A stretch of 64,000 bases of DNA from Bugula neritina (lineage: Eukaryota; Animalia; Bryozoa): contig OZ037767.1 of NCBI GenBank assembly GCA_964035545.1, positions 13,005,801 through 13,069,800 of the forward strand, given 5' to 3'. Below are positions 7,120-64,000 of this stretch, piece after piece. A program made the position numbers and the translations under genes. The notes under the pieces were generated by a model. The model searched no databases. It was not told the origin of the DNA and saw nothing but the letters and a program-made list of their open reading frames with translations. Position 1 is the stretch's first letter. The number at the start of each line of letters is the position of its first letter.

Positions 7120-7142
7120 GATAACTCTCTCCTGGGACTGCT

Positions 7143-7194
7143 TTAGGCAAATGAATCGCTGCTCCAACTTTTACGTCTGTTTTCTGGTTGATAC
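7143..7194 (-). CDS. Gene A terminal coding exon: (M)YQPENRRKSWSSDSFA*
   Basis: tttgctgtag|G TAT. Phase 2 matches the upstream donor. Homologous to 1916-1967. Confidence 0.8.
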
Positions 7195-7454
7195 CTACAG
7201 CAAAATATTTAATGAATAAATAGATTAAGCTCTCAAACACATGGTATATGGTATATATATATTGTATATACGAGTACTTATCCTGGTTATTGCAATACCA
7301 AAAAACAACTATTTGAATATAATAAAAGCTGATACAGAACAAGTAACTTCAGTTCCAACTAATAATATATCATAATGTGGATGGATATATTTTAAGTACT
7401 ACAATCATGAGTGTTTCTACAAAACAGATATAGCCGTAATCTCTATACACCTAC

Positions 7455-7657
7455 ATTCTGTTAGCTCCACCTGGCCATACAGGGTTCCTTTTTCTGTGAG
7501 AAAAGCTGTCCTCTGAACTGGAACCATCTGATCCTGCAAAGCTTTCTGGGAATCTGGCCATTCCAATGTTGTAGTTACTTGCTTTAAATCTCAGTGCAGG
7601 ATGTAGATTAAGCAATGGGTTATTTCTGTGTACATCAGGTTTGGTTCTTCTACGTAT
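7455..7657 (-). CDS. Gene A cytoplasmic-tail exon (IRRRTKPDVH...WPGGANR)
   Basis: tttacttgtag|ATA start and AT|GTAGGT end. 203 bp open frame. Homologous to 1137-1339. Confidence 0.85.
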
Positions 7658-8130
7658 CTACAAGTAAATCTCCAGTTATACCAAACTGTCAATTTAATAA
7701 ATTTGCAAATTATTTCTGAAATTTCAAGTTTATTTTAGTCTATGAAAAAAAAATCAGCAGTCTTTTAAATAAAACTTATATGCCAACTATCTCTATTAAT
7801 TTATCTAAGAAGTAGCTTAGTTTGTCAGCACGCTCTGTGCTGCCAGGATGGTCTCAGATGAACACCTTCTCAGAAGCTATTTTATGACAGAGTTAGAATT
7901 TTAGAGAGTGGTGCAACAGAAGCTGTTTCATCACGGACTACTACGTTTTGTTGTAAGTAAACTTAATCTTCAAATCAGCAATTAAAAATGTTATAATTTG
8001 ACAAATGAAGATCTCAGTACACTATGTATCTCAAACTAGATAAATATGTTACTTAATATGGAACAAAATTGAAAAGATGTATTTATAATGTGTGTACCAC
8101 TTATTACAATTGCAGTTGGCTGATAGATTA

Positions 8131-8232: not shown

Positions 8233-8333
8233 ACATACTGCCAGCAACACCCCTACGACTCCTAAAAATATCACTCCTGCTACAGTTCCAGATATCACAG
8301 GGGCCAGCCACACATCTGCTCTAGTCGGTTCTT
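8233..8333 (-). CDS. Gene A transmembrane exon: (E)EPTRADVWLAPVISGTVAGVIFLGVVGVLLAVC
   Basis: ctttttag|AA start and TGT|GTAAGT end. Phase 1 in, phase 0 out. Hydrophobic helix with GxxxG spacing. Confidence 0.88.
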
Positions 8334-8976: not shown

Positions 8977-9242
8977 CTGCTGCGGTAGTCATAGGAGATA
9001 TTGTGGTAGTTGTACTAGCTGGTACAATGACTATCTGTCCTCCTGATGCTGTTATAGATGTCTCGTTTCCAACTTGAATAGGAACTGAAGCTGTCTGAGT
9101 GACCGCTTCTGACACAATGTTCTCTAAGCTTGTCACATTGAGCTCTTCTTCACCAGCTAGTGGATTCATAGCAACGTCAAAGTCTACTATTACATTTGCA
9201 TTTGGATCAACTGCACGTTTCCTTCTACCTTGGGCTTGACAT
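8977..9242 (-). CDS. Gene A SEA-like domain C-terminal half with RRKR site and S/T-rich stalk
   Basis: cattttag|A TGT start and GCA G|GTATTT end. Encodes CQAQGRRKRAVDPNANVIVDFDVAM...STTTTISPMTTAA. Phases 2 and 1 fit the neighbouring exons. Confidence 0.85.
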
Positions 9243-9363: not shown

Positions 9364-9428
9364 GTGAAAGAAATTCTTATAACTGCAACAAAATGGGTAG
9401 CAGCCTCAGAGGAGAAACTGGCATATAT
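9364..9428 (-). CDS. Gene A SEA-like domain middle exon: IYASFSSEAATHFVAVIRISF(T)
   Basis: ttctttttacag|ATA start and AC|GTAAGT end. 65 bp, bridges phase 0 to phase 2. Not in the ORF track. Confidence 0.85.
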
Positions 9429-9959: not shown

Positions 9960-10096
9960 TTGAATAATCACAGCCAGTCTCATCTCAGCATATGCTACTG
10001 TTGTTGGATCTTCAATGTCAGTGTTACAGCCACTTGGAAATGTGTAGATGATTTGTGTGCTGAACTGAACTGTGTTCACTGCGACAGCTGTATTCT
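9960..10096 (-). CDS. Gene A SEA-like domain first exon: (E)NTAVAVNTVQFSTQIIYTFPSGCNTDIEDPTTVAYAEMRLAVIIQ
   Basis: ttttttgtag|AG start and CAA|GTGAGA end. The D-I-x-D-P-x-T-x-x-Y pattern resembles the start of the SEA helix. Confidence 0.85.
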
Positions 10097-10278: not shown

Positions 10279-10395
10279 CAACACAATTGTTAGTTGATGA
10301 GTCTCTAATGTAGTTGCTGTTACATTCACATACTTCAAGGAGGTTACATACTTCATTTTCCAAACAATTGTCACATGGCTTAGTGAATGGGGGCT
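10279..10395 (-). CDS. Gene A six-cysteine EGF-like exon: (E)PPFTKPCDNCLENEVCNLLEVCECNSNYIRDSSTNNCV
   Basis: gactgtag|AG start and G|GTAAGT end. Symmetric phase 1-1, 117 bp. Cys spacing C-2-C-5-C-5-C-1-C-12-C. Confidence 0.88.
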
Positions 10396-11360
10396 CTACA
10401 GTCAAATGAAACCGTAATAAGCAATTAAATATAAGCAATCAACAATCAACTATATTGATACAAATTATTATTTAAATATCTTTGTAATTGATAGTTTTGT
10501 AAACATTAAAAAATAAACTGGCTGAAGTTATAAAAAAACTGGCCAATTACACTTATTACTAAGTTAAACAAGACTAAGTTCGAGTACTTTTCTTCTCTTT
10601 AGTCTATACCAGGACTTAATTGATGCCGATTTTTATCTTTAATTATCTGTAACGAACTTTGCTTGCAAACAAGCTATTGTTATTTAACTAGGTAAAAAAT
10701 TATTTAAATTAATTTTTCAGGTAGAGCAAAGTTACAAAGTTTACTATGCAATTATAACTAACAGAAATGAATATAATAGTACAAGTAACAATAATGTAGA
10801 GCTGACTTTTTTATCAACTGATAAAAACTGATTGATCTATGAATTGTATAATAAGAAAATAACATTAAAAGAAGCAGTACAAACGCTACAGTCTGATAAA
10901 GAATATATATACCTTTTCTTTGTACCAAAAGATAAACAGCTATCAAGCAATGCATATTATTGTCTAATTGCTGTTAGATTCTATGTCTGAGAACTTTGAA
11001 TGTACTCGTTGAGCAATGGCCCAAAACAAAAAAAAATGTCGTAAAATATTTTTTCTCTAGTTGTGAAGTTTTAAAGTGTTGCTGCATGCTTTAATTAAAC
11101 CTGCTTCTAATGATCCTAAAACAAAAGGTTTGTGTCCGAGCTTTTTTATAAGGGCCTAAACCTCATATCAAACTGCAAGAGTAGAGCGGTTTAAACCAAT
11201 CAGCAATTGACGGTTAGATTTAAAATCAAATCAAGGCTTTCTTTATCTAAATTGATAGTATTATAACAGAAATATCCATATTTGAATGGAAGTGGGAAAT
11301 TACTTCTTCATAGTCTCAAGAAAAAAGGTTTTCCATTAATTTAGACGTAATAACGCACAG

Positions 11361-11597
11361 ACCACCACAACACTCACTACAACCACAATAACAGCTACTA
11401 CTACAACACCCACAACCACCACAACACCCACCACTACTACAACACCAACCACTACTACAACACCCACAACCACAACAACACCTACCACTACTAGAGCACC
11501 CACCACCACAACACCCACTACAACCACAACACCAACCACTACTACAACACCCACCACTACTACCACACCCACAACCACGACAACACCCTCAACCACA
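11361..11597 (+). repeat. Inverted (antisense) copy of the 18-bp mucin repeat inside the gene A intron, about 13 units
   Basis: Plus strand reads acacccacaaccaccaca / acaccaaccactactaca (PTTTTT), the reverse complement of the giant exon's units. Confidence 0.92.
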
Positions 11598-12245
11598 TCG
11601 CAGACAATTAAGAAAAAGAGAAAAGCAAAAGAACACTACTGTGGAAAGACCAACAACTGCTCACCAAAACAACAAAGACATAAATCAAAATGCATCGAAC
11701 ACGTATATGTTAGTGAGATATAGTTATTGAGAATAAAAAAGAAGCACATGTCCTCTATTAGGGCGAAAAACTACTGTGGTATATACATCTGTTATCCTAA
11801 TGACATCTGAAAACATATTGATATGCAAAGTGATGCACAAAAAGGGAGTAGCAATGCAAGCGAAAGAAAGTGGTAGGACAGGTAACTAAAACAAAGCTTG
11901 AATAGTTATTACTTGATGTACATTTATGCGTTCGATAGGAAACACTTGGTTTACATGAGCAAAACGGATTGCTACTATGAATGAGATCCGATTGACAAAA
12001 GCTGAGTTATGAATGAGAAAAGAACGGAGGCAAGAAGTTGTTCACAACTCGACTAGCCCAACAAGTTCAGAAAAATGATCTATAATGAAGGCTATGAAAG
12101 CAAGGTAAACACCTGATTTAGAAATGGACCATTTACACTACTTGTTGCGAAGCATAATTGTGATGAGAAAAATGAAACAAAAAGTAAAAACAAAGATAAC
12201 TAATCATAAAACCAAAAGGAATAAAAAGAAAAGTAATAAGATTAC

Positions 12246-15200
12246 CTTGAACAATTATGGATGTTGTTGCGGTTGTCGGTGTAGCGGTTGTTGGTGTTGA
12301 AGTAGTGGTGGGTGTTGTAGTAGTGGTTGGTGTTGTAGTGGTGGTGGGTGTTGTCGTGGTAGTGGGTGTTGTTGTAGTTGTGGGCGTGGTAGTAGTGGTT
12401 GGCGGTGTAGTGGTGGTGGGTGTTGTTGTGGTTGTGGGTGTTGTTGTGGTTGTGGGCGTGGTAGTAGTTGTGGGTGTTGTAGTAGTGGTTGGTGTTGCAG
12501 TAGTGGTTGGTGTTGTCGTGGTAGTGGGTGTTGTCGTGGTAGTGGGTGTTGTCGTAGTTGTGGGTGTGGTAGTAGTGGTTGTGGGTGTGGTAGTAGTGGT
12601 TGGTGTTGTAGTGGTGGTGGGTGTTGTTGTGGTTGTGGGTGTTGTTATGGTTGTGGGTGTGGTGGTAGTTGTGGGTGTTAATGTGGTTGTGGGTGTGGTA
12701 GTAGTTGTGGGTGTTGTGGTGGTTGTGGGTGTTGTAGTAGTGGTTGGTGTTGTAGTGGTGGTTGGTGTTGTAGTAGTGGTTGGTGTTGTCGTGGTAGTGG
12801 GTGTTGTCGTGGTTGTGGGTGTGGTAGTAGTGGTGGGTGTTGTAGTAGTGGTTGGTGTTGTCGTGGTTGTGGGTGTTGTTGTCGTTGTAGGTGTGGTAGT
12901 AGTTGTGGGTGTTGTAATAGTGCTTGGTGTTGTAGTAGTGGTTGGTGTTGTCGTGGTAGTGGGTGTTGTCGTGGTTGTGGGCGTGGTAGTAGTGGTTGGT
13001 GTTGTAGTGGTGGTGGGTGTTGTAGTAGTGGTTGGTGTTGTAGTAGTGGTTGGTGTTGAAGTCGTGCTGGGTGTTGTCGTGGTTGTGGGTGTTGTTGTCG
13101 TTGTAGGTGTGGTAGTAGTTGTGGGTCTTGTGGTAGTGGTTGGAGTTGTAGTAGTGGTTGGTGTTGTCGTGGTAGTGGGTGTTGTTGTGGTTGTGGGTGT
13201 GGTAGAAGTGGTTAGTGTCGTAGTGGTGGTGGGTGTTGTTGTGGTTGTGGGTGTTGTTGTGGTTGTGGGCGTGGTAGTAATTGTGGGTGTTGTAGTAGTG
13301 GTTGGTGTTGTCGTTGTAGTGGGTGTTGTCGTGGTTGTGGGCGTGGTAGTAGTGGTTGTTGTTGTAGTGGTGGTGGGGGTTGTTGTGGTTGTGGGTGTTG
13401 TCGTGGTTGTGGGTGTTGTTGTGGTTGTGGGTGTGGTAGTAGTTGTGGGTGTCGTAGTAGTGGTTGGTGTTGTAGTAGTGGTTGGTGTTGTAGTAGTGGT
13501 TGGTGTTGTAGTAGTGGTTGGTGTTGTAGTCGTGCTGGGTGTTGTGGTGGTTGTGGGTGTTGTTGTCGTTGTGGGTGTTGTTGTGGTTGTGGGTGTTGTC
13601 ATGGTTGTGGGTGTGGTAGTAGTAGTGGGTGTTGTAGTAGTGGTTGGTGTTGTAGTGGTGGTTAGTAATGTAGTGGTGGTGGGTGTTGTAGTAGTGGTTG
13701 GTGTTGTAGTGGTGGTTGGTGTTGTCGTGGTAGTGGGTGTTGTTGTGGTTGTGGGTGTGGTAGTAGTGGTTGGTGTTGTAGTGGTGGTTGGTGTTGTCGT
13801 GGTAGTGGGTGTTGTTGTGGTTGTGGGTGTTGTAGTAGTGGTTGGTGTTGTCGTGGTAGTGGGTGTTGTCGTGGTTGTGGGCGTGGTAGTAGTGGTTGGT
13901 GTTGTAGTGGTGGTGGGTGTTGTTGTGGTAGTGGGTGTTGTCGTGGTTGTGGGTGTGGTAGTAGTGGTTGGTGTTGTAGTAGTGGTGGGTGTTGTCGTGG
14001 TTGTAGGTGTTGCAGTGGTGGTGGGTGTTGTGGTTGTTGTGGGCGTCGTAGTCGTGGTAGGTGTTGTAGTAGTGGTTAAAGTCGTAGTAGTCGTGGGTGT
14101 TGTCGTGGTTGTGGGTGTGGTAGTAGTGGTGGGTGTTGTAGTAGTCGTGGGTGTTGTAGTAGTGGTTGGTGTTGTAGTGGTGGTTAGTAATGTAGTGGTG
14201 GTGGGTGTTGTAGTAGTGGTTGGTGTTGTAGTGGTGGTTGGTGTTGTAGTAGTGGTTGGTGTTGTCGTGGTAGTGGGTGTTGTCGTGGTTGTGGGTGTGG
14301 TAGTAGTGGTGGGTGTTGTAGTAGTGGTTGGTGTTGTAGTGGTGGTTAGTAATGTAGTGGTGGTGGGTGTTGTAGTAGTGGTTGGTGTTGTAGTAGTGAT
14401 TGGTGTTGTAGTGGTGGTTAGTAATGTAGTGGTGGTGGGTGTTGTAGTAGTGGTTGGTGTTGTAGTAGTGGTTGGTGTTGTCGTGGTTGTGGGTGTTGTC
14501 GTGGTAGTGGGTGTTGTCGTGGTTGTGGGCGTGGTAGTAGTGGTTGGTGTTGTAGTGGGGGTGGGTGTTGTTGTGGTTGTGGGTGTTGTTGTGGTTGTGG
14601 GTGTGGTAGTAGTTGTGGGTGTCGTAGAAGTGGTTGGTGTTGTAGTAGTGGTTGGTGTTGTAGTAGTGGTTGGTGTTGTCGTGGTTGTGGGTGTTGTTGT
14701 CGTTGTAGGTGTGGTAGTAGTTGTGGGTGTTGTAATAGTGCTTGGTGTTGTAGTAGTGGTTGGTGTTGTCGTGGTAGTGGGTGTTGTCGTGGTTGTGGGC
14801 GTGGTAGTAGTGGTTGGTGTTGTAGTGGTGGTGGGTGTTGTAGTAGTGGTTGGTGTTGTAGTAGTGGTTGGTGTTGAAGTCGTGCTGGGTGTTGTCGTGG
14901 TTGTGGGTGTTGTTGTCGTTGTAGGTGTGGTAGTAGTTGTGGGTCTTGTGGTAGTGGTTGGAGTTGTAGTAGTGGTTGGTGTTGTCGTGGTAGTGGGTGT
15001 TGTTGTGGTTGTGGGTGTGGTAGAAGTGGTTAGTGTCGTAGTGGTGGTGGGTGTTGTTGTGGTTGTGGGTGTTGTTGTGGTTGTGGGTGTTGTTGTGGTT
15101 GTGGGTGTGGTAGTAGTTGTGGGTGTTCTGGTGGTTGTGGGCGTCGTAGTTGTGGTTGGTGTTGTAGTGGTGATGGGTGTTGTTGTGGTTGTGGGTGTGG

Positions 15201-18200
15201 TAGTAGTGGTTGGTGTTGTCGTGGTAGTGGGTGTTGTGGTGGTTGGGGGTGTGGTAGTAGTGGTGGGTGTTGTAGTGGTCGTGGGTGTTGTAGTAGTGGT
15301 TAGTGTAGTAGTGGTGGTTGGTAATGTAGTGGTGGTGGGTGTTGTAGTGGTGGTTGGTGTTGTAGTAGTGGTTGGTGTTGTCGTGGTAGTGGGTGTTGTC
15401 GTGGTTGTGGGTGTCGTAGTAGTGGTTGGTGTTGTAGTAGTGGTTGGTGTTGTAGTAGTGGTTGGTGTTGTAGTAGTGGTTGGTGTTGTAGTCGTGCTGG
15501 GTGTTGTCGTGGTTGTGGATGTTGTTGTCGTTGTGGGTGTGGTAGTAGTTGTGGGTCTTGTAGTTGTGGTTGGAGTTGTAGTAGTGGTTGGTGTTGTCGT
15601 GGTAGTGGGTGTTGTCGTGGTTGTGGGTGTGGTAGTAGTGGTTGGTGTTGTAATGGTGGTTGGTGTTGTTGTGGTTGTGGGTGTTGTTGTGGTTGTGGGT
15701 GTGGTAGTGGTTGTGGGTCTTGTAGTAGTGGTTGGAGTTGTAGTAGTGGTTGGGGTGGTAGTGGTGGTTGGTGTTGTGGTAGTGGTTGGAGTTGTGGTTG
15801 TGGTTGGTGTTGTAGTAGTGGTTGGTGTTGTAGTCGTGCTGGGTCTTGTCGTGGTTGTGGGTGTTGTTGTGGTTGTAGGTGTTGTTGTGGTTGGGGGTGT
15901 TGTAGTAGTCGTGGGTGTTGTAGTAATGGTTGGTGTTGTAGTGGTGGTTAGTAATGTAGTGGTTGTGGGTGTGGTAGTAGTGGTTGTGGGTGTGGTAGTA
16001 GTGGTTGGTGTTGTAGTGGTGGTGGGTGTTGTTGTGATTGTGGGTGTTGTTGTGGTTGTGGGTGTGGTAGTAGTGGTTGGTGTTGTGGTGGTTGTGGGCG
16101 TTCTAGTCGTGGTAGGTGTTGTAGTAGTGGTTAAAGTCATAGTAGTCGTGGGTGTTGTCGTGGTTGTGGGTGTGGTAGTAGTGGTGGGTGTTGTAGTAGT
16201 CGTGGGTGTTGTAGTAGTGGTTGGTGTTGTTGTGGTGGTTGGTGTTGTAGTAGTGGTTGGTGTTGTCGTGGTAGTGGGTGTTGTTGTGGTTGTGGGTGTG
16301 GTAGTAGTGGTTGGTAGTGTAGTGATGGTGGGTGTTGTCGTGGTTGTGGGTGTTGTTGTGGTTGTGGGTGTGGTAGTAGTTGTGGGTGTTGTCATGAGAG
16401 TGGGTGTTGTGGTGGTTGTGGGTGTGGTAGTAGTGGTTGGTGTTGTCGTGGTAGTGGGTGTTGTGGTGGTTGGGGGTGTGGTAGTAGTGGTGGGTGTTGT
16501 AGTGGTCGTGGGTGTTGTAGTAGTGGTTAGTGTAGTAGTGGTGGTTGGTAATGTAGTGGTGGTGGGTGTTGTAGTGGTGGTTGGTGTTGTAGTAGTGGTT
16601 GGTGTTGTAGTCGTGCTGGGTGTTGTCGTGGTTGTGGGTGTTGTTGTCGTTGTAGGTGTGGTAGTAGTTGTGGGTCTTGTAGTAGTGGTTGGAGTTGTAG
16701 TAGTGGTCGGTGTTGTCGTGGTGGTGGGTGTTGTCGTGGTTGTGGGTGTGGTAGTAGTGGTTGGTGTTGTAGTGGTGGTGGGTGTTGTTGTGGTTGTGGG
16801 TGTTGTTGTGAATGTGGGTGTGGTAGTAGTTGTGGGTGTCGTAGTAGTGGTGGGTGTTGTCGTGGTAGTGGGTGTTGTCGTGGTTGTGGGCGTGGTAGTA
16901 GTTGTAGGTGTTGTAGTAGTGGTGGGTGTTGTTGTGGTTGTGGGTGTTGTTGTGGTTGTGGGTGTTGTAGTAGTCGTGGGTGTTGTAGTAGTGGTTGGTG
17001 TTGTAGTGGTGGTTAGTAATGTAGTGGTTGTGGGTGTGGTAGTAGTGGTTGGTGTTGTAGTGGTGGTGGGTGTTGTTGTGGTTGTGGGCGTGGTAGTAGT
17101 TGTAGGTGTTGTAGTAGTGGTGGGTGTTGTTGTGGTTGTGGGTGTTGTTGTGGTTCCGGGTGTTGTAGTAGCCGTGGGTGTTGTAGTAGTGGTTGGTGTT
17201 GTAGTGGTGGTTAGTAATGTAGTGGTTGTGGGTGTGGTAGTAGTGGTTGGTGTTGTAGTAGTGGTTGGTGTTGTTGTGGTTGTGGGTGTTGTTGTGGTTG
17301 TGGGCGTGGTAGTAGTTGTGGGTGTTGTAGTAGTGGTTGGTGTTGTCGTGGTAGTGGGTGTTGTCGTGGTTGTGGGCGTGGTAGTAGTGGTTGGTGTTGT
17401 AGTGGTGGTGGGTGTTGTCTTGGTTGTGGGTGTTGTTGTAGTTGTGGGTGTGGTAGTATTTGTGGGTGTTGTAGTAGTGGTTGGTGTGGTAGTGGTGGTT
17501 GGTGTTGTGGTAGTGGTTGGTGTTGTAGTAGTAGTTGGTGTTGTGGTTGTGGTTGGTGTTGTAGTAGTGGTTGGTGTTGTAGTCGTGCTAGGTGTTGCCG
17601 TGGTTGTGGGTGTTGTTGTGGTTGTAGGTGTGGTAGTAGTTGTGGGTGTTGTAATAGTGCTTGGTGTTGTAGTAGTAGTTGGTGTTATCGTGGTAGTGGG
17701 TGTTGTCGTGGTTGTGGGCGTGGTAGTAGTTGTTGGTGTTGTAGTGGTGGTGGGTGTTGTTGTGGTTGTGGGTGTTGTTGTGATTGTGGGTGTGATAGTA
17801 GTTGTGGGTCTTGTAGTAGTGGTTGGTGTTGTTGTGGTTGTGGGTGTTGTTGTGGTTGTGGGTGTTGTAGTAGTTGTTGGTGTTGTAGTAGTGGTTAGTG
17901 TGGTAGTGGTGGTTGGTGTTGTGGTAGTGGTTGGAGTTGTGGTTGTGGTTGGTGTTGTAGTAGTGGTTGGTGTTGTAGTCGTGCTGGGTCTTGTCGTGGT
18001 TGTGGGTGTTGTTGTGGTTGTAGGTGTGGTAGTAGTTGTGGGTGTTGTAGTAGTGGTTGGTGTTGTAGTAGTGGTTGGTGTTGTCGTGGTAGTGGGTGTT
18101 GTTGTGGTTGTGGGTGTGGTAGTAGTGGTTGGTGTTGTAGTGGTGGTGGGTGTTGTAGTAGTGGTTGGTGTTGTAGTCGTGCTGGGTGTTGTCGTGGTTG

Positions 18201-51200: not shown

Positions 51201-54200
51201 TTGTAGTCGTGCTGGGTCTTGTCGTGGTTGTGGGTGTTGTTGTGGTTGTAGGTGTGGTAGTAGTTGTGGGTGTTGTAGTAGTGGTTGGTGTTGTAGTAGT
51301 GGTTGGTGTTGTCGTGGTAGTGGGTGTTGTTGTGGTTGTGGGTGTGGTAGTAGTGGTTGGTGTTGTAGTGGTGGTGGGTGTTGTAGTAGTGGTTGGTGTT
51401 GTAGTCGTGCTGGGTGTTGTCGTGGTTGTGGGTGTTGTCGTGGTGGTGGGTGTTCTCGTGGTTGTGGGCGTGGTAGTAGTGGTTGTTGTTGTAGTGGTGG
51501 AGGGTGTTGTTGTAGTTGTGAGTGTTGTTGTGATTGTGGGTGTGATAGTAGTTGTGGGTCTTGTAGTAGTGGTTGGTGTTGTTGTGGTTGTGGGTGTTGT
51601 TGTGGTTGTGGGTGTTGTAGTAGTGGTTGGTATTGTAGTAGTGGTTAGTGTGGTAGTGGTGGTTGGTGTTGTAGTAGTGGTTAGAGTTGTGGTTGTGGTT
51701 GGTGTTGTAGTAGTGGTTGGTGTTGTAGTCGTGCTGGGTCTTGTCGTGGTTGTGGGTGTTGTTGTGGTTGTAGGTGTGGTAGTAGTTGTGGGTGTTGTAG
51801 TAGTGGTTGGTGTGGTAGTGGTGGTTGGTGTTGTGGTAGTGGTTGGTGTTGTAGTAGTAGTTGGTGTTGTGGTTGTGGTTGGTGTTGTAGTAGTGGTTGG
51901 TGTTGTAGTCGTGCTAGGTGTTGTCGTGGTTGTGGGTGTTGTTGTGGTTGTAGGTGTGGTAGTAGTTGTGGGTGTTGTAATAGTGCTTGGTGTTGTAGTA
52001 GTGGTTGGTGTTATCGTAGTAGTGGGTGTTGTCGTGGTTGTGGGCGTGGTAGTAGTTGTTGGTGTTGTAGTGGTGGTGGGTGTTGCTGTGGTTGTGGGTG
52101 TTGTTGTGATTGTGGGTGTGATAGTAGTTGTGGGTCTTGTAGTAGTGGTTGGTGTTGTTGTGGTTGTGGGTGTTGTTGTGGTTGTGGGTGTTGTAGTAGT
52201 GGTTGGTGTTGTAGTAGTGGTTAGTGTGGTAGTGGTGGTTGGTGTTGTGGTAGTGGTTGGAGTTGTGGTTGTGGTTGGTGTTGTAGTAGTGGTTGGTGTT
52301 GTAGTCGTGCTGGGTCTTGTCGTGGTTGTGGGTGTTGTTGTGGTTGTAGGTGTGGTAGTAGTTGTGGGTGTTGTAGTAGTGGTTGGTGTTGTAGTAGTGG
52401 TTGGTGTTGTCGTGGTAGTGGGTGTTGTTGTGGTTGTGGGTGTGGTAGTAGTGGTTGGTGTTGTAGTGGTGGTGGGTGTTGTAGTAGTGGTTGGTGCTGT
52501 AGTCGTGCTGGGTGTTGTCGTGGTTGTGGGTGTTGTCGTGGTGGTGGGTGTTCTCGTGGTTGTGGGCGTGGTAGTAGTGGTTGTTGTTGTAGTGGTGGAG
52601 GGTGTTGTTGTAGTTGTGAGTGTTGTTGTGATTGTGGGTGTGATAGTAGTTGTGGGTCTTGTAGTAGTGGTTGGTGTTGTTGTGGTTGTGGGTGTTGTTG
52701 TGGTTGTGGGTGTTGTTGTGGTTCCGGGTGTTGTAGTAGCCGTGGGTGTTGTAGTAGTGGTTGGTGTTGTAGTGGTGGTTAGTAATGTAGTGGTTGTGGG
52801 TGTGGTAGTAGTGGTTGGTGTTGTAGTAGTGGTTGGTGTTGTTGTGGTTGTGGGTGTTGTTGTGGTTGTGGGCGTGGTAGTAGTTGTGGGTGTTGTAGTA
52901 GTGGTTGGTGTTGTCGTGGTAGTGGGTGTTGTCGTGGTTGTGGGCGTGGTAGTAGTGGTTGGTGTTGTAGTGGTGGTGGGTGTTGTCTTGGTTGTGGGTG
53001 TTGTTGTGGTTGTGGGTGTGGTAGTAGTTGTGGGTGTTGTAGTAGTGGTTGGTGTGGTAGTGGTGGTTGGTGTTGTGGTAGTGGTTGGTGTTGTAGTAGT
53101 AGTTGGTGTTGTGGTTGTGGTTGGTGTTGTAGTAGTGGTTGGTGTTGTAGTCGTGCTAGGTGTTGTCGTGGTTGTGGGTGTTGTTGTGGTTGTAGGTGTG
53201 GTAGTAGTTGTGGGTGTTGTAATAGTGCTTGGTGTTGTAGTAGTAGTTGGTGTTATCGTGGTAGTGGGTGTTGTCGTGGTTGTGGGCGTGGTAGTAGTTG
53301 TTGGTGTTGTAGTGGTGGTGGGTGTTGTTGTGGTTGTGGGTGTTGTTGTGATTGTGGGTGTGATAGTAGTTGTGGGTCTTGTAGTAGTGGTTGGTGTTGT
53401 TGTGGTTGTGGGTGTTGTTGTGGTTGTGGGTGTTGTAGTAGTGGTTGGTGTTGTAGTAGTGGTTAGTGTGGTAGTGGTGGTTGGTGTTGTGGTAGTGGTT
53501 GGAGTTGTGGTTGTGGTTGGTGTTGTAGTAGTGGTTGGTGTTGTAGTCGTGCTGGGTCTTGTCGTGGTTGTGGGTGTTGTTGTGGTTGTAGGTGTGGTAG
53601 TAGTTGTGGGTGTTGTAGTAGTGGTTGGTGTTGTAGTAGTGGTTGGTGTTGTCGTGGTAGTGGGTGTTGTTGTGGTTGTGGGTGTGGTAGTAGTGGTTGG
53701 TGTTGTAGTGGTGGTGGGTGTTGTAGTAGTGGTTGGTGTTGTAGTCGTGCTGGGTGTTGTCGTGGTTGTGGGTGTTGTCGTGGTAGTGGGTGTTCTCGTG
53801 GTTGTGGGCGTGGTAGTAGTGGTTGGTGTTGTAGTGGTGGTGGGTGTTGTTGTAGTTGCGGGTGTTGTTGTGGTTGTGGGTGTGGTAGTAGTTGTGGGTG
53901 TCGTAGTAGTGGTTGGTGTGGTAGTAGTTGTCGGTGTTGTAGTAGTGGTTGGTGTTGTCGTGGTAGTGGGTGTTGTAGTCGTGCTGGGTGTTGTCGTGGT
54001 TGTGGGTGTTGTTGTCGTTGTAGGTGTGGTAGTAGTTGTGGGTCTTGTAGTAGTGGTTGGAGTTGTAGTAGTGGTTGGTGTTGTCGTGGTGGTGGGTGTT
54101 GTCGTGGTTGTGGGTGTGGTAGTAGTGGTTGGTGTTGTAGTGGTGGTGGGTGTTGTTGTGGTTGTGGGTGTTGTTGTGGTTGTGGGTGTGGTAGTAGTTG

Positions 54201-57200
54201 TGGGTGTCGTAGTAGTGGTGGGTGTTGTCGTGGTAGTGGGTGTTGTCGTGGTTGTGGGCGTGGTAGTAGTTGTAGGTGTTGTAGTAGTGGTGGGTGTTGT
54301 TGTGGTTGTGGGTGTTGTTGTGGTTGTGGGTGTTGTAGTAGTCATGGGTGTTGTAGTAGTGGTTGGTGTTGTAGTGGTGGTTAGTAGTGTAGTGGTTGTG
54401 GGTGTGGTAGTAGTGGTTGGTGTTGTAGTGGTGGTGGGTGTTGTTGTGGTTGTGGGTGTTGTTGTGGTTGTGGGTGTGGTAGTAGTTGTGGGTGTCGTAG
54501 TAGTGGTTGGTGTGGTAGTAGTTGTCGGTGTTGTAGTAGTGGTTGGTGTTGTCGTGGTAGTGGGTGTTGTCGTGGTTGTGGGTGTTGTAGTAGTGGTTGG
54601 TGTTGTAGTGGTGGTGGGTGTTGTTGTGGTTGTGGGTGTTGTTGTGGTTGTGGGTGTTGTTGTGGTGGTGGGTGTTGTAGTAGTGGTGGGTGTTGTAGTG
54701 GTGGTTGGTGTTGTAGTAGTGGTTGGTGTTGTCGTGGTAGTGGGTGTTGTTGTGGTTGTGGGTGTGGTAGTAGTGGTTGGTGTTGTAGTGGTGGTGGGTG
54801 TTGTCGTGGTTGTGGGTGTTGTCGTGGTAGTGGGTGTTGTCGTGGTTGTGGGCGTGGTAGTAGTGGTTGGTGTTGTAGTAGTGGTTGGTGTTGTAGTAGT
54901 GGTTGGTGTTGTAGTAGTGGTTGGTGTTGTCGTGGTAGTGGGTGTTATTGTGGTTGTGGGTGTGGTAGTAGTTGTGGGTGTTGTAGTGGTGGTGGGTGTT
55001 GTTGTGGTTGTGGGTGTTGTTGTGGTTGTGGGTGTGGTAGTAGTTGTGGGTGTCGTAGTAGTGGTTGGTGTTGTAGTAGTGGTTGGTGTTGTAGTATTGG
55101 TTGGTGTTGTCGTGGTAGTGGGTGTTGTCGTGGTTGTGGGCGTGGTAGTAGTGGTTGGTAGTGTAGTGGTGGTGGGTGTTGTAGTAGTGGTTGGTGTTGT
55201 AGTAGTGGTTGGTGTTGTAGTAGTGGTTGGTGTTGTAGTCGTGCTGGGTGTTGTCGTGGTTGTGGGTGTTGTTGTCGTTGTAGGTGTGGTAGTAGTTGTG
55301 GGTCTTGTAGTAGTGGTTGGAGTTGTAGTAGTGGTTGGTGTTGTCGTGGTGGTGGGTGTTGTCGTGGTTGTGGGTGTGGTAGTAGTGGTTGGTGTTGTAG
55401 TGGTGGTGGGTGTTGTTGTGGTTGTGGGTGTTGTTGTGAATGTGGGTGTGGTAGTAGTTGTGGGTGTCGTAGTAGTGGTGGGTGTTGTCGTGGTAGTGGG
55501 TGTTGTCGTGGTTGTGGGCGTGGTAGTAGTTGTAGGTGTTGTAGTAGTGGTGGGTGTTGTTGTGGTTGTGGGTGTTGTTGTGGTTGTGGGTGTTGTAGTA
55601 GTCGTGGGTGTTGTAGTAGTGGTTGGTGTTGTAGTGGTGGTTAGTAATGTAGTGGTTGTGGGTGTGGTAGTAGTGGTTGGTGTTGTAGTGGTGGTGGGTG
55701 TTGTTGTGGTTGTGGGCGTGGTAGTAGTTGTAGGTGTTGTAGTAGTGGTGGGTGTTGTTGTGGTTGTGGGTGTTGTTGTGGTTGCGGGTGTTGTAATAGC
55801 CGTGGGTGTTGTAGTAGTGGTTGGTGTTGTAGTGGTGGTTAGTAATGTAGTGGTTGTGGGTGTGGTAGTAGTGGTTGGTGTTGTAGTAGTGGTTGGTGTT
55901 GTCGTGGTTGTGGGTGTTGTTGTGGTTGTGGGCGTGGTAGTAGTTGTGGGTGTTGTAGTAGTGGTTGGTGTTGTCGTGGTAGTGGGTGTTGTCGTGGTTG
56001 TGGGCGTGGTAGTAGTGGTTGGTGTTGTAGTGGTGGTGGGTGTTGTCTTGGTTGTGGGTGTTGTTGTGGTTGTGGGTGTGGTAGTAGTTGTGGGTGTTGT
56101 AGTAGTGGTTGGTGTGGTAGTGGTGGTTGGTGTTGTGGTAGTGGTTGGTGTTGTAGTAGTAGTTGGTGTTGTGGTTGTGGTTGGTGTTGTAGTAGTGGTT
56201 GGTGTTGTAGTCGTGCTAGGTGTTGTCGTGGTTGTGGGTGTTGTTGTGGTTGTAGGTGTGGTAGTAGTTGTGGGTGTTGTAATAGTGCTTGGTGTTGTAG
56301 TAGTGGTTGGTGTTATCGTAGTAGTGGGTGTTGTCGTGGTTGTGGGCGTGGTAGTAGTTGTTGGTGTTGTAGTGGTGTTGGGTGTTGTTGTGGTTGTGGG
56401 TGTTGTTGTGATTGTGGGTGTGATAGTAGTTGTGGGTCTTGTAGTAGTGGTTGGTGTTGTTGTGGTTGTGGGTGTTGTTGTGGTTGTGGGTGTTGTAGTA
56501 GTGGTTGGTGTTGTAGTAGTGGTTAGTGTGGTAGTGGTGGTTGGTGTTGTGGTAGTGGTTGGAGTTGTGGTTGTGGTTGGTGTTGTAGTAGTGGTTGGTG
56601 TTGTAGTCGTGCTGGGTCTTGTCGTGGTTGTGGGTGTTGTTGTGATTGTAGGTGTGGTAGTAGTTGTGGGTGTTGTAGTAGTGGTTGGTGTTGTAGTAGT
56701 GGTTGGTGTTGTCGTGGTAGTGGGTGTTGTTGTGGTTGTGGGTGTGGTAGTAGTGGTTGGTGTTGTAGTGGTGGTGGGTGTTGTAGTAGTGGTTGGTGTT
56801 GTAGTCGTGCTGGGTGTTGTCGTGGTTGTGGGTGTTGTCGTGGTGGTGGGTGTTCTCGTGGTTGTGGGCGTGGTAGTAGTGGTTGTTGTTGTAGTGGTGG
56901 AGGGTGTTGTTGTAGTTGTGGGTGTTGTTGTGATTGTGGGTGTGATAGTAGTTGTGGGTCTTGTAGTAGTGGTTGGTGTTGTTGTGGTTGTGGGTGTTGT
57001 TGTGGTTGTGGGTGTTGTAGTAGTGGTTGGTATTGTAGTAGTGGTTAGTGTGGTAGTGGTGGTTGGTGTTGTAGTAGTGGTTGGAGTTGTGGTTGTGGTT
57101 GGTGTTGTAGTAGTGGTTGGTGTTGTAGTCGTGCTGGGTCTTGTCGTGGTTGTGGGTGTTGTTGTGGTTGCAGGTGTGGTAGTAGTTGTGGGTGTTGTAG

Positions 57201-60200
57201 TAGTGGTTGGTGTTGTAGTAGTGGTTGGTGTTGTCGTGGTAGTGGGTGTTGTTGTGGTTGTGGGTGTGGTAGTAGTGGTTGGTGTTGTAGTGGTGGTTAG
57301 TAATGTAGTGGTTGTGGGTGTGGTAGTAGTGGTTGGTGTTGTAGTGGTGGTGGGTGTTGTTGTGGTTGTGGGCGTGGTAGTAGTTGTAGGTGTTGTAGTA
57401 GTGGTGGGTGTTGTTGTGGTTGTGGGTGTTGTTGTGGTTGCGGGTGTTGTAATAGCCGTGGGTGTTGTAGTAGTGGTTGGTGTTGTAGTGGTGGTTAGTA
57501 ATGTAGTGGTTGTGGGTGTGGTAGTAGTGGTTGGTGTTGTAGTAGTGGTTGGTGTTGTCGTGGTTGTGGGTGTTGTTGTGGTTGTGGGCGTGGTAGTAGT
57601 TGTGGGTGTTGTAGTAGTGGTTGGTGTTGTCGTGGTAGTGGGTGTTGTCGTGGTTGTGGGCGTGGTAGTAGTGGTTGGTGTTGTAGTGGTGGTGGGTGTT
57701 GTCTTGGTTGTGGGTGTTGTTGTGGTTGTGGGTGTGGTAGTAGTTGTGGGTGTTGTAGTAGTGGTTGGTGTGGTAGTGGTGGTTGGTGTTGTGGTAGTGG
57801 TTGGTGTTGTAGTAGTAGTTGGTGTTGTGGTTGTGGTTGGTGTTGTAGTAGTGGTTGGTGTTGTAGTCGTGCTAGGTGTTGTCGTGGTTGTGGGTGTTGT
57901 TGTGGTTGTAGGTGTGGTAGTAGTTGTGGGTGTTGTAATAGTGCTTGGTGTTGTAGTAGTGGTTGGTGTTGTAGTATTGGTTGGTGTTGTCGTGGTAGTG
58001 GGTGTTGTTGTGGTTGTGGGTGTTGTAGTAGTGGTTGGTGTTGTAGTAGTGGTTAGTGTGGTAGTGGTGGTTGGTGTTGTGGTAGTGGTTGGAGTTGTGG
58101 TTGTGGTTGGTGTTGTAGTAGTGGTTGGTGTTGTAGTCGTGCTGGGTCTTGTCGTGGTTGTGGGTGTTGTTGTGATTGTAGGTGTGGTAGTAGTTGTGGG
58201 TGTTGTAGTAGTGGTTGGTGTTGTAGTAGTGGTTGGTGTTGTCGTGGTAGTGGGTGTTGTTGTGGTTGTGGGTGTGGTAGTAGTGGTTGGTGTTGTAGTG
58301 GTGGTGGGTGTTGTAGTAGTGGTTGGTGTTGTAGTCGTGCTGGGTGTTGTCGTGGTTGTGGGTGTTGTCGTGGTGGTGGGTGTTCTCGTGGTTGTGGGCG
58401 TGGTAGTAGTGGTTGTTGTTGTAGTGGTGGAGGGTGTTGTTGTAGTTGTGGGTGTTGTTGTGATTGTGGGTGTGATAGTAGTTGTGGGTCTTGTAGTAGT
58501 GGTTGGTGTTGTTGTGGTTGTGGGTGTTGTTGTGGTTGTGGGTGTTGTAGTAGTGGTTGGTATTGTAGTAGTGGTTAGTGTGGTAGTGGTGGTTGGTGTT
58601 GTAGTGGTGGTTAGTAATGTAGTGGTTGTGGGTGTGGTAGTAGTGGTTGGTGTTGTAGCGGTGGTGGGTGTTGTTGTGGTTGTGGGCGTGGTAGTAGTTG
58701 TAGGTGTTGTAGTAGTGGTGGGTGTTGTTGTGGTTGTGGGTGTTGTTGTGGTTGCGGGTGTTGTAGTAGCCGTGGGTGTTGTTGTAGTGGTTGGTGTTGT
58801 AGTGGTGGTTAGTAATGTAGTGGTTGTGGGTGTGGTAGTAGTGGTTGGTGTTGTAGTAGTGGTTGGTGTTGTAGTAGTGGTTGGTGTTGTCGTGGTAGTG
58901 GGTGTTGTCGTGGTTGTGGGCGTGGTAGTAGTGGTTGGTGTTGTAGTGGTGGTGGGTGTTGTCTTGGTTGTGGGTGTTGTTGTGGTTGTGGGTGTGGTAG
59001 TAGTTGTGGGTGTTGTAGTAGTGGTTGGTGTGGTAGTGGTGGTTGGTGTTGTGGTAGTGGTTGGTGTTGTAGTAGTAGTTGGTGTTGTGGTTGTGGTTGG
59101 TGTTGTAGTAGTGGTTGGTGTTGTAGTCGTGCTAGGTGTTGTCGTGGTTGTGGGTGTTGTTGTGGTTGTAGGTGTGGTAGTAGTTGTGGGTGTTGTAATA
59201 GTGCTTGGTGTTGTAGTAGTGGTTGGTGTTATCGTAGTAGTGGGTGTTGTCGTGGTTGTGGGCGTGGTAGTAGTTGTTGGTGTTGTAGTGGTGGTGGGTG
59301 TTGTTGTGGTTGTGGGTGTTGTTGTGATTGTGGGTGTGATAGTAGTTGTGGGTCTTGTAGTAGTGGTTGGTGTTGTTGTGGTTGTGGGTGTTGTTGTGGT
59401 TGTGGGTGTTGTAGTAGTGGTTGGTGTTGTAGTAGTGGTTAGTGTGGTAGTGGTGGTTGGTGTTGTGGTAGTGGTTGGAGTTGTGGTTGTGGTTGGTGTT
59501 GTAGTAGTGGTTGGTGTTGTAGTCGTGCTGGGTCTTGTCGTGGTTGTGGGTGTTGTTGTGGTTGTAGGTGTGGTAGTAGTTGTGGGTGTTGTAGTAGTGG
59601 TTGGTGTTGTAGTAGTGGTTGGTGTTGTCGTGGTAGTGGGTGTTGTTGTGGTTGTGGGTGTGGTAGTAGTGGTTGGTGTTGTAGTGGTGGTGGGTGTTGT
59701 AGTAGTGGTTGGTGTTGTAGTCGTGCTGGGTGTTGTCGTGGTTGTGGGTGTTGTCGTGGTGGTGGGTGTTCTCGTGGTTGTGGGCGTGGTAGTAGTGGTT
59801 GTTGTTGTAGTGGTGGAGGGTGTTGTTGTAGTTGTGAGTGTTGTTGTGATTGTGGGTGTGATAGTAGTTGTGGGTCTTGTAGTAGTGGTTGGTGTTGTTG
59901 TGGTTGTGGGTGTTGTTGTGGTTGTGGGTGTTGTAGTAGTGGTTGGTATTGTAGTAGTGGTTAGTGTGGTAGTGGTGGTTGGTGTTGTAGTAGTGGTTAG
60001 AGTTGTGGTTGTGGTTGGTGTTGTAGTAGTGGTTGGTGTTGTAGTCGTGCTGGGTCTTGTCGTGGTTGTGGGTGTTGTTGTGGTTGTAGGTGTGGTAGTA
60101 GTTGTGGGTGTTGTAGTAGTGGTTGGTGTGGTAGTGGTGGTTGGTGTTGTGGTAGTGGTTGGTGTTGTAGTAGTAGTTGGTGTTGTGGTTGTGGTTGGTG

Positions 60201-63200
60201 TTGTAGTAGTGGTTGGTGTTGTAGTCGTGCTAGGTGTTGTCGTGGTTGTGGGTGTTGTTGTGGTTGTAGGTGTGGTAGTAGTTGTGGGTGTTGTAATAGT
60301 GCTTGGTGTTGTAGTAGTGGTTGGTGTTATCGTAGTAGTGGGTGTTGTCGTGGTTGTGGGCGTGGTAGTAGTTGTTGGTGTTGTAGTGGTGGTGGGTGTT
60401 GCTGTGGTTGTGGGTGTTGTTGTGATTGTGGGTGTGATAGTAGTTGTGGGTCTTGTAGTAGTGGTTGGTGTTGTTGTGGTTGTGGGTGTTGTTGTGGTTG
60501 TGGGTGTTGTAGTAGTGGTTGGTGTTGTAGTAGTGGTTAGTGTGGTAGTGGTGGTTGGTGTTGTGGTAGTGGTTGGAGTTGTGGTTGTGGTTGGTGTTGT
60601 AGTAGTGGTTGGTGTTGTAGTCGTGCTGGGTCTTGTCGTGGTTGTGGGTGTTGTTGTGGTTGTAGGTGTGGTAGTAGTTGTGGGTGTTGTAGTAGTGGTT
60701 GGTGTTGTAGTAGTGGTTGGTGTTGTCGTGGTAGTGGGTGTTGTTGTGGTTGTGGGTGTGGTAGTAGTGGTTGGTGTTGTAGTGGTGGTGGGTGTTGTAG
60801 TAGTGGTTGGTGCTGTAGTCGTGCTGGGTGTTGTCGTGGTTGTGGGTGTTGTCGTGGTGGTGGGTGTTCTCGTGGTTGTGGGCGTGGTAGTAGTGGTTGT
60901 TGTTGTAGTGGTGGAGGGTGTTGTTGTAGTTGTGAGTGTTGTTGTGATTGTGGGTGTGATAGTAGTTGTGGGTCTTGTAGTAGTGGTTGGTGTTGTTGTG
61001 GTTGTGGGTGTTGTTGTGGTTGTGGGTGTTGTTGTGGTTCCGGGTGTTGTAGTAGCCGTGGGTGTTGTAGTAGTGGTTGGTGTTGTAGTGGTGGTTAGTA
61101 ATGTAGTGGTTGTGGGTGTGGTAGTAGTGGTTGGTGTTGTAGTAGTGGTTGGTGTTGTTGTGGTTGTGGGTGTTGTTGTGGTTGTGGGCGTGGTAGTAGT
61201 TGTGGGTGTTGTAGTAGTGGTTGGTGTTGTCGTGGTAGTGGGTGTTGTCGTGGTTGTGGGCGTGGTAGTAGTGGTTGGTGTTGTAGTGGTGGTGGGTGTT
61301 GTCTTGGTTGTGGGTGTTGTTGTGGTTGTGGGTGTGGTAGTAGTTGTGGGTGTTGTAGTAGTGGTTGGTGTGGTAGTGGTGGTTGGTGTTGTGGTAGTGG
61401 TTGGTGTTGTAGTAGTAGTTGGTGTTGTGGTTGTGGTTGGTGTTGTAGTAGTGGTTGGTGTTGTAGTCGTGCTAGGTGTTGTCGTGGTTGTGGGTGTTGT
61501 TGTGGTTGTAGGTGTGGTAGTAGTTGTGGGTGTTGTAATAGTGCTTGGTGTTGTAGTAGTAGTTGGTGTTATCGTGGTAGTGGGTGTTGTCGTGGTTGTG
61601 GGCGTGGTAGTAGTTGTTGGTGTTGTAGTGGTGGTGGGTGTTGTTGTGGTTGTGGGTGTTGTTGTGATTGTGGGTGTGATAGTAGTTGTGGGTCTTGTAG
61701 TAGTGGTTGGTGTTGTTGTGGTTGTGGGTGTTGTTGTGGTTGTGGGTGTTGTAGTAGTGGTTGGTGTTGTAGTAGTGGTTAGTGTGGTAGTGGTGGTTGG
61801 TGTTGTGGTAGTGGTTGGAGTTGTGGTTGTGGTTGGTGTTGTAGTAGTGGTTGGTGTTGTAGTCGTGCTGGGTCTTGTCGTGGTTGTGGGTGTTGTTGTG
61901 GTTGTAGGTGTGGTAGTAGTTGTGGGTGTTGTAGTAGTGGTTGGTGTTGTAGTAGTGGTTGGTGTTGTCGTGGTAGTGGGTGTTGTTGTGGTTGTGGGTG
62001 TGGTAGTAGTGGTTGGTGTTGTAGTGGTGGTGGGTGTTGTAGTAGTGGTTGGTGTTGTAGTCGTGCTGGGTGTTGTCGTGGTTGTGGGTGTTGTCGTGGT
62101 AGTGGGTGTTCTCGTGGTTGTGGGCGTGGTAGTAGTGGTTGGTGTTGTAGTGGTGGTGGGTGTTGTTGTAGTTGCGGGTGTTGTTGTGGTTGTGGGTGTG
62201 GTAGTAGTTGTGGGTGTCGTAGTAGTGGTTGGTGTGGTAGTAGTTGTCGGTGTTGTAGTAGTGGTTGGTGTTGTCGTGGTAGTGGGTGTTGTAGTCGTGC
62301 TGGGTGTTGTCGTGGTTGTGGGTGTTGTTGTCGTTGTAGGTGTGGTAGTAGTTGTGGGTCTTGTAGTAGTGGTTGGAGTTGTAGTAGTGGTTGGTGTTGT
62401 CGTGGTGGTGGGTGTTGTCGTGGTTGTGGGTGTGGTAGTAGTGGTTGGTGTTGTAGTGGTGGTGGGTGTTGTTGTGGTTGTGGGTGTTGTTGTGGTTGTG
62501 GGTGTGGTAGTAGTTGTGGGTGTCGTAGTAGTGGTGGGTGTTGTCGTGGTAGTGGGTGTTGTCGTGGTTGTGGGCGTGGTAGTAGTTGTAGGTGTTGTAG
62601 TAGTGGTGGGTGTTGTTGTGGTTGTGGGTGTTGTTGTGGTTGTGGGTGTTGTAGTAGTCATGGGTGTTGTAGTAGTGGTTGGTGTTGTAGTGGTGGTTAG
62701 TAGTGTAGTGGTTGTGGGTGTGGTAGTAGTGGTTGGTGTTGTAGTGGTGGTGGGTGTTGTTGTGGTTGTGGGTGTTGTTGTGGTTGTGGGTGTGGTAGTA
62801 GTTGTGGGTGTCGTAGTAGTGGTTGGTGTGGTAGTAGTTGTCGGTGTTGTAGTAGTGGTTGGTGTTGTCGTGGTAGTGGGTGTTGTCGTGGTTGTGGGTG
62901 TTGTAGTAGTGGTTGGTGTTGTAGTGGTGGTGGGTGTTGTTGTGGTTGTGGGTGTTGTTGTGGTTGTGGGTGTTGTTGTGGTGGTGGGTGTTGTAGTAGT
63001 GGTGGGTGTTGTAGTGGTGGTTGGTGTTGTAGTAGTGGTTGGTGTTGTCGTGGTAGTGGGTGTTGTTGTGGTTGTGGGTGTGGTAGTAGTGGTTGGTGTT
63101 GTAGTGGTGGTGGGTGTTGTCGTGGTTGTGGGTGTTGTCGTGGTAGTGGGTGTTGTCGTGGTTGTGGGCGTGGTAGTAGTGGTTGGTGTTGTAGTAGTGG

Positions 63201-64000
63201 TTGGTGTTGTAGTAGTGGTTGGTGTTGTAGTAGTGGTTGGTGTTGTCGTGGTAGTGGGTGTTATTGTGGTTGTGGGTGTGGTAGTAGTTGTGGGTGTTGT
63301 AGTGGTGGTGGGTGTTGTTGTGGTTGTGGGTGTTGTTGTGGTTGTGGGTGTGGTAGTAGTTGTGGGTGTCGTAGTAGTGGTTGGTGTTGTAGTAGTGGTT
63401 GGTGTTGTAGTATTGGTTGGTGTTGTCGTGGTAGTGGGTGTTGTCGTGGTTGTGGGCGTGGTAGTAGTGGTTGGTAGTGTAGTGGTGGTGGGTGTTGTAG
63501 TAGTGGTTGGTGTTGTAGTAGTGGTTGGTGTTGTAGTAGTGGTTGGTGTTGTAGTCGTGCTGGGTGTTGTCGTGGTTGTGGGTGTTGTTGTCGTTGTAGG
63601 TGTGGTAGTAGTTGTGGGTCTTGTAGTAGTGGTTGGAGTTGTAGTAGTGGTTGGTGTTGTCGTGGTGGTGGGTGTTGTCGTGGTTGTGGGTGTGGTAGTA
63701 GTGGTTGGTGTTGTAGTGGTGGTGGGTGTTGTTGTGGTTGTGGGTGTTGTTGTGAATGTGGGTGTGGTAGTAGTTGTGGGTGTCGTAGTAGTGGTGGGTG
63801 TTGTCGTGGTAGTGGGTGTTGTCGTGGTTGTGGGCGTGGTAGTAGTTGTAGGTGTTGTAGTAGTGGTGGGTGTTGTTGTGGTTGTGGGTGTTGTTGTGGT
63901 TGTGGGTGTTGTAGTAGTCGTGGGTGTTGTAGTAGTGGTTGGTGTTGTAGTGGTGGTTAGTAATGTAGTGGTTGTGGGTGTGGTAGTAGTGGTTGGTGTT
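12246..64000 (-). CDS. Giant Pro/Thr mucin-domain exon (PTTTTT)n of a membrane-tethered mucin; 5' end outside the window
   Basis: ORF track gives 16,842 aa without a stop, and the same repeat frame continues past the internal ATG at 62661 to the window edge. The exon ends TSIIVQ G|GTAATC (donor at 12245-12244, phase 1), in frame with the EGF exon. Confidence 0.92.
12295..64000 (-). repeat. 18-bp coding minisatellite (about 2,870 units) with higher-order duplications
   Basis: Unit CCN-(ACN)5. Marker variants recur at offsets of 7920, 3924, 6660 and 8316 bp, all multiples of 18. Confidence 0.95.

Follow-up and report, generated by a model that had tools for sequence, protein, structure and literature searches.

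The SEA-type tethered mucins of vertebrates (MUC1, MUC3A/B, MUC12, MUC13 and MUC17) are the closest described systems to the gene considered here. They have a signal peptide and a Pro/Thr/Ser-rich (PTS) region of variable-number tandem repeats (VNTR) carried in one very large exon. Their EGF-like and cleavable juxtamembrane modules lie on small exons, followed by a single transmembrane (TM) helix and a short tail containing Ser and Tyr. Their paralogues are clustered in tandem and their arrays grow by unequal recombination. In a 2026 preprint human MUC12 alleles range from 4,677 to 23,080 amino acids (aa), and the VNTR exon is called the largest human coding exon (PMC13345508). We analysed 64,000 nucleotides (nt) of the bryozoan Bugula neritina (the window, C3:13,005,801-13,069,800, contig OZ037767.1, minus strand for the gene in question) with its flanks on C3 included; extended coordinates run the window numbering on past 64000. 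The same list of features recurs at this locus, with a leader that is signal-peptide-like and a cleavage that is predicted. We argue that it is probably a functional gene whose product is a type I membrane-anchored, mucin-like glycoprotein of ~19,976 aa, a member of a bryozoan family of at least 11, which would be cut by furin and which carries a recently amplified repeat array.

The center of the argument is a single giant exon. The original prediction described about 17,250 uninterrupted codons, roughly 80% of them Thr, in an exon still open at the window edge. The frame is in fact open from 63999 down to 12136 (17,288 codons, with 17,251 before the GT donor after 12246), and within the window it is 79.7% Thr and 15.9% Pro. 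It runs on for 7,238 nt past the edge to a total of 19,701 codons. It begins at extended 71235 (C3:13,077,035) with MKISQMMINVLQKVILVLVL..., and an AG acceptor immediately precedes the frame start MKISQMMINVLQKVILVLVLQQTMNT.... The next window had been named as the place to look for an acceptor and a signal peptide, and what stands there is an ATG with a signal-peptide-like leader directly behind the acceptor. The leader reads MK..(V or L)ILVLVL..QQTMNT and is common to the starts of four arrays, with a hydrophobic core of only ~7-8 residues. The reading of an exceptionally large coding exon holds, and the exon is bigger than is visible in the window: 58,990 nt including the ATG and leader. 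At the other end is a phase 1 GT donor (12245-12244), whose CAAG/GTA is kept in the paralogues (here and below a slash within a motif marks a splice or cleavage point).

The giant exon is a Pro/Thr/Ser tandem-repeat domain in a single open reading frame (ORF), as in transmembrane mucins. Its residues include 15,670 Thr, 3,129 Pro and 189 Ser (80% Thr, 16% Pro), and the polypeptide would weigh 1.98 MDa. The leader is followed by ~3,270 PTTTTT units in all; a unit-by-unit count gives 3,127, with six codons in 2,929 of them and exactly PTTTTT in 2,410. Tandem Repeats Finder reports a single array from 12280 to 64000, made of 2,873 copies of an 18-nt unit with 0% indels. The plus strand is G/T-rich from 12,280 to the window edge, with a GC skew of ~+0.9.

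An open frame alone is weak evidence here, because only 248 of the 19,663 codons in the exon are one substitution from a stop. One can imagine a non-coding satellite that has stayed open by chance, made of ACN and CCN repeats that rarely acquire stops. The low share of codons one step from a stop (1.3%) would fit that scenario, and so would the other two minus-strand frames, whose longest open runs are 2,144 and 485 codons. The pattern of variation does not. Over the 2,929 aligned six-codon units minor bases account for 7-53% at position 3 of the codon and for 0.4-5.6% at positions 1 and 2. Where pairs of array segments are at least 97% identical, 70% of the differences fall at codon position 3. 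Counted by codon, the differences between segment pairs, which are not independent of one another, come to 5,675 synonymous against 2,469 non-synonymous, though non-synonymous sites are twice as many. Variants in unit length are codon-sized (5- and 7-codon units). No frameshifted patch occurs anywhere in the array, and each 50-codon window is at least 84% Thr plus Pro. A satellite should show neither threefold periodic variation, nor an excess of synonymous changes, nor indels that are only in frame. Nor should several paralogues then conserve an ATG and leader where the array starts and a phase 1 donor where it ends. The satellite reading was already disfavoured and we consider it very improbable. 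Judged by the codon-position pattern, the lack of frameshifts and the conservation in paralogues, the giant exon is constrained coding sequence.

The codon set may itself help to keep such a long exon intact. ACN and CCN codons have no stop within one step, and they are nearly free of GT donors and poly(A) signals. The coding strand of the giant exon has 10 GT dinucleotides where 109 are expected, only three of them past the 45-codon leader, and none of these GT dinucleotides matches GT[AG]AG. Neither AATAAA nor ATTAAA occurs on that strand of the exon. We infer that this scarcity of cryptic donors, poly(A) signals and one-step stops matters for expression of the exon.

Downstream of the array a 313-aa C-terminus spliced in consistent phases had been predicted, and seven small exons reproduce it exactly. 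The joints are 12246>10395, 10279>10096, 9960>9428, 9364>9242, 8977>8333, 8233>7657 and 7455>7194, all with GT/AG sites, in phases 1,1,0,2,1,0,2. The whole coding sequence (CDS) is 59,931 nt, or 19,976 aa (Table 1). By sequence inspection there is a single TM helix and a tail: a hydrophobic stretch of ~25 residues is followed by IRRRTK. The frame of the last exon, ..YQPE..W..D..A-stop, ends at the same stop in six paralogous copies, while the alternative frame ends differently in each copy.

The paralogues are the second line of evidence. Five of them, including the array gene, lie within 304 kb; three have the orientation of the array gene and one is convergent with it. The four neighbours have the same exons, splice sites and phases as the giant-array gene. 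In four of the five the (PTTTTT)n array opens with the leader, right after an AG acceptor, and all of the arrays end ..Q/GTA at phase 1. Synonymous divergence (dS) between paralogue pairs reaches 0.41. The ratio of non-synonymous to synonymous divergence (dN/dS) in the C-terminal exons, summed exon by exon, is 0.24-0.39 in 9 of the 10 pairs and 0.61 in the closest pair. By this comparison the C-terminal exons are under purifying selection.

A genome search with a profile of module exon 3 finds 11 loci on C1, C3, C4 and C6, so the family has at least 11 members in the genome. The same exon was compared with 1.84 billion protein representatives, and only short unspliced ORFs of genomic contigs and three spurious bacterial or archaeal matches came back. 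The contigs of these relatives belong to two independent JGI Bugula-associated samples and one ENA assembly. Among them a contig from JGI aligns collinearly to the locus at 84% identity, with exons 88-98% and introns 85% identical. A literature search found no paper on this mucin family.

Even if the family is functional, the expanded member could be a runaway copy that is silent or dying, either unexpressed or not translated at full length. Its size is an outlier, with 19,701 codons vs 1,084, 1,208, 1,704 and 5,141 in the frames of its neighbours. The expansion is very young, no RNA run containing the locus was found, and this copy alone has an inverted array fragment in intron 1. On the other side, none of its eight coding exons or splice sites is damaged, and leader, furin site and stop are likewise intact. 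Its dN/dS is 0.24 vs its closest paralogue, and there is no frameshift in 59 kb. We consider a dead copy distinctly unlikely, and a functional gene remains our preferred reading.

It is worth considering the small exons one by one, since it is here that the original prediction is only partly supported. It had described an EGF domain and a SEA-like one. For the EGF part the signs are mixed. Six Cys are invariant in the five paralogues and there is a CECxSNY motif, but Pfam EGF_2 stays below its cut-off (11.1 bits against 22.1, E=0.54). TNFR_nem gives E=0.071, and a profile of this exon finds no match among the PDB sequences. We call it EGF-like. The SEA-like claim, for which a hidden Markov model (HMM) search on the spliced C-terminus had been proposed as the check, is not supported by the searches of single exons and of the genome. 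Pfam SEA (PF01390) is unmatched at E up to 10 when each small exon is searched separately, and no other Pfam family rises above its cut-off in that search. With PF01390 as query, the six-frame translation of the genome gives matches at other loci and none at the mucin locus. The autoproteolysis motif G/S[VI]VV (GSVVV-type) is absent as well; the sequence there is ...RISFTCQAQGRRKR/AVDPNANVIVDF.... PDB profile searches with module exons 1 and 3 gave chance matches only or none.

What is conserved instead is a furin site. Every aligned member has R-X-[KR]-R (as RRKR, RKKR or RRRR), even those of only 35-42% identity. The layout of the juxtamembrane module is a conserved Cys in exon 1, then a conserved Cys and RRKR/AVD opening exon 3, with conserved NVT and NET sequons. 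Exon 1 is 86-98% identical among the neighbouring paralogues and 32-39% in the distant members. The module thus appears to be an unrecognised family that sits at the position of SEA, with a furin site where SEA cleaves itself. There are faint hints of a common fold. In the Atlas language-model search the two nearest named clusters to module exon 3 are both SEA, at 0.81 and 0.80, which is under the 0.9 threshold; exon 1 has no usable match there. The AlphaFold2 model of exon 3 alone has a mean confidence (pLDDT) of 51 and the order strand, strand, helix, strand, strand. A sub-threshold lead and a low-confidence model weakly suggest a SEA-like fold for the module. A three-chain complex prediction (module exons 1, 2 and post-furin 3) scored 0.01, which says nothing about binding either way. 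No second EGF separates the module from the TM helix; exon 3 leads directly to the TM exon by way of a short Thr-rich linker.

The array has grown very recently, and this bears on how far its length can be trusted. There is an exact 8,345-bp tandem duplication (48,953-57,297 is the same as 57,269-65,613), and a 4,228-bp block occurs three times. Many other blocks are 98-99.6% identical, at offsets such as 3,924, 6,660 and 7,920 nt, which are nearly all multiples of 18. Exact repeats of at least 1 kb cover 55% of the array. At an identity of at least 99% over 1 kb, 94% of it has another copy, and the non-redundant content is ~13.7 kb. The array of a neighbouring paralogue is 15 kb and only 14% redundant. 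The simplest reading is a very recent amplification of about fourfold by unequal exchange. The array would evolve by unequal recombination, and a core of ~13-14 kb, the size of a neighbour's array, would have been amplified.

This leads to the alternative that the gene is real and its 59-kb length is not. Near-identical blocks of several kb may have been miscounted, or an unstable haplotype assembled, such that the usual array differs by more than 20%. The exact duplications and the small non-redundant content are what one would expect in that case, and human mucin VNTRs are strongly length-polymorphic. The HiFi reads of the published assembly have a mean of ~9.7 kb (27.37 Gb in 2.82 M reads; PMC11480708). 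On the other side, most duplicate blocks differ by 0.1-1.5% and are separable by 132-fold HiFi coverage, and collapsing all copies that are at least 99.9% identical over 3 kb still leaves ~41.8 kb of array. When assemblers go wrong on tandem repeats, they tend to collapse rather than expand them. The array is also no blend of loci, because almost no 31-mers are common to the arrays of different paralogues. An independent copy number was sought in the summed array depth of the DNA run and was rejected: its 180-325x single copy counts all contigs at least 95% similar, and it does not track the 31-mer multiplicity of 30-46. We consider a seriously wrong length unlikely, though the exact length of the array is uncertain.

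It must be noted that several points count against a functional gene of this size. The only run containing the locus is DNA, with an even depth of ~110 over introns and exons, and the joints in its contigs at the locus are repeat artefacts rather than splice joints. The 1.8 billion protein representatives gave unspliced genomic ORF fragments only and no transcript-derived protein. The copy number is not secure, because the 8,345-bp exact duplication is close to the HiFi mean of ~9.7 kb (PMC11480708). The intact frame in most of the array needs no selection, because 94% of it is recent duplicate. O-glycosylation, furin cleavage and a location at the cell surface are all things we infer.

If the gene is functional, the life of its protein can be sketched. 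The chain would enter the endoplasmic reticulum by its signal-peptide-like leader. In the Golgi the threonines would be densely O-glycosylated, which would turn the array into a stiff brush with a contour length of ~4-5 micrometres. A furin-type convertase would cleave the conserved RRKR/A inside the juxtamembrane module. After the cut the mucin chain may stay attached to the membrane stub by non-covalent contacts, like the chains of SEA domains and of the Notch heterodimerisation domain, or it may be shed.

The differences from known systems can now be weighed. With the SEA-type vertebrate mucins there is no detectable sequence homology; Pfam SEA is unmatched, and an RRKR furin site replaces G/SVVV. 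MUC3, MUC12, MUC13 and MUC17 are arranged EGF-SEA-EGF-TM, and the bryozoan gene lacks the second EGF. Its repeat unit is 6 aa and almost pure Thr, whereas vertebrate mucin units are tens to hundreds of residues long. Its size is on a par with that of the longest human MUC12 allele reported (23,080 aa, PMC13345508). The original prediction took ~20 kb as the size of the largest human coding exons, but these alleles make that benchmark outdated, and they place the bryozoan exon at the known extreme rather than beyond it. MUC4 and MUC16 are also very large tethered mucins, and both are processed into mucin and membrane subunits. MUC4 has NIDO-AMOP-vWD with GDPH cleavage and MUC16 has many SEA repeats, and neither arrangement is present here. 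The heterodimerisation domain of Notch, with its S1 furin cleavage and SEA-like fold, is similar in having a furin site in a juxtamembrane module that follows EGF-like modules. A two-chain, non-covalently held protein would be the expected outcome here too. Unlike Notch, the bryozoan gene lacks LNR modules and a Notch-type intracellular domain, and it shows no sequence similarity to Notch. We argue by analogy that in architecture and genomic behaviour it is of the vertebrate tethered-mucin type, in an unusual and very large form. It is set apart by a unit of six residues that is almost pure Thr, by an unrecognised module that contains a furin site, by belonging to a lineage-specific family and by the recency of the expansion.

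Table 1. Coding exons and first intron of the giant-array gene (window coordinates)
Feature	Position	Strand	Remarks
Giant coding exon, (PTTTTT)n	12246..64000 in window, on to ATG at extended 71235	-	CDS 58,990 nt = 19,663 codons + 1 base
Intron 1	10396..12245	-	1,850 nt; contains inverted copy of array unit
EGF-like exon	10279..10395	-	six Cys, C-x2-C-x5-C-x5-C-x-C-x12-C; CxCxxNY motif
Juxtamembrane module exon 1	9960..10096	-	strand-helix part, one conserved Cys
Juxtamembrane module exon 2 (IYASFSSEAATHFVAVIRISF)	9364..9428	-	from paralogue comparison
Juxtamembrane module exon 3	8977..9242	-	RRKR furin motif 9226-9215; NVT and NET sequons; short Thr-rich linker
TM exon (VWLAPVISGTVAGVIFLGVVGVLLAVC)	8233..8333	-	84-94% identity in paralogues; IRRRTK stop-transfer sequence in next exon
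Cytoplasmic tail exon	7455..7657	-	donor AT/GTAGGT, phase 2; donor position conserved (AA/GTGAGT in paralogues)
Last coding exon (..MYQPENRRKSWSSDSFA)	7143..7194	-	stop 7145-7143

Two repeats in the introns deserve mention. The inverted array-unit copy of intron 1 is 240 nt long (11356-11596) and lies ~650 nt past the donor of the giant exon. It looks like a by-product of array instability rather than a conserved element, because intron 1 of the four neighbouring paralogues has none. In the pre-mRNA it could base-pair with any array unit. Directly after the TM exon a minisatellite (~8125-8232, minus strand) reiterates the donor of that exon (GTAAGTAACTTAC..AACTGTAATA..). All five paralogues have this minisatellite, and in the next gene it is far longer.

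Other members of the family vary on the same theme. A distant one (JGI contig, 194-2274) has module exon 2, exon 3 (with RRRR) and an EGF-like exon, after which module exon 1 returns. Because the EGF-like exon and the module recur after a first module, the module looks like an autonomous unit that can be repeated, and distant members seem to carry tandem repeats of EGF plus module. A 277-aa open frame at a distant family member was considered as a whole module in one exon and rejected; it is a (CA)n microsatellite. The convergent paralogue (plus strand) has its TM, tail and last exons at window 188-283, 1137-1322 and 1902-1988. Its 1,208-codon array is just before the window, and the stops of the two genes are ~5 kb apart. 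The fifth neighbouring paralogue, at extended 115,291-120,402 (C3:13,121,091-13,126,202, minus strand), has a 1,704-codon stalk that opens with a TTAPPTVA-like unit and ends with PTTTTT units, which puts two repeat types in one exon.

Upstream of all five neighbouring genes there is a conserved block of ~60 nt, CTTTATATAGCATCTATAAATAGACCAACAAAAGG. For the array gene it is at extended 76,900-77,000 (C3 ~13,082,700), ~12.9-13.0 kb past the window end and ~5.6 kb before the ATG. Both of its strands can be read as a TATA box (TATAAATA sense, TATATAAA antisense), and its conservation counts in favor of a functional gene. Between the convergent mucin genes a run of open frames (48-115 aa; window 3820-5001, minus strand) has no Pfam match in any of them; what is left of a mobile element, or a gene missed by annotation, may lie there. 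The same intergenic region has a 49-nt unit repeated three times (86% matches) at window 5686-5830. Rfam detects no hammerhead ribozyme in 1-12400 at gathering thresholds, nor in 300-900 at E up to 1; the only matches are microRNA-like chance ones on a (TA)n tract at 632-827.

If long DNA reads and RNA confirm the gene, it would have the longest uninterrupted coding exon (~59 kb) and be one of the largest proteins (~20,000 aa, ~2 MDa before glycans) that we found reported outside vertebrates. It would belong to a bryozoan-only family with a furin site where SEA-type mucins cleave themselves, and its array would have quadrupled recently and would probably be polymorphic in length. We hold this whole statement tentatively, at slightly less than an even chance. 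Long-read assemblies of non-model animals do contain mucin exons comparable in size to the human MUC12 extreme, and such exons can be checked as coding by codon-position statistics and paralogue comparison even before there is RNA. The near-pure (ACN)5CCN coding shows how composition may protect a giant exon, with no one-step stops, few GT donors and no poly(A) signals. If true, this would also be a natural system for the transcription, export, translation and glycosylation of the product of a 60-kb mRNA.

Tethered mucins determine how thick and how stiff the coat on a cell surface is. If confirmed, the gene would be a natural system for the tuning of glycocalyx height. A stalk of ~4-5 micrometres would be longer than many cilia or microvilli and would dominate the surface that carries it. 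B. neritina is a major fouling species, and such a coat could matter for antifouling, for feeding surfaces, for the adhesion of larvae or for the housing of symbionts.

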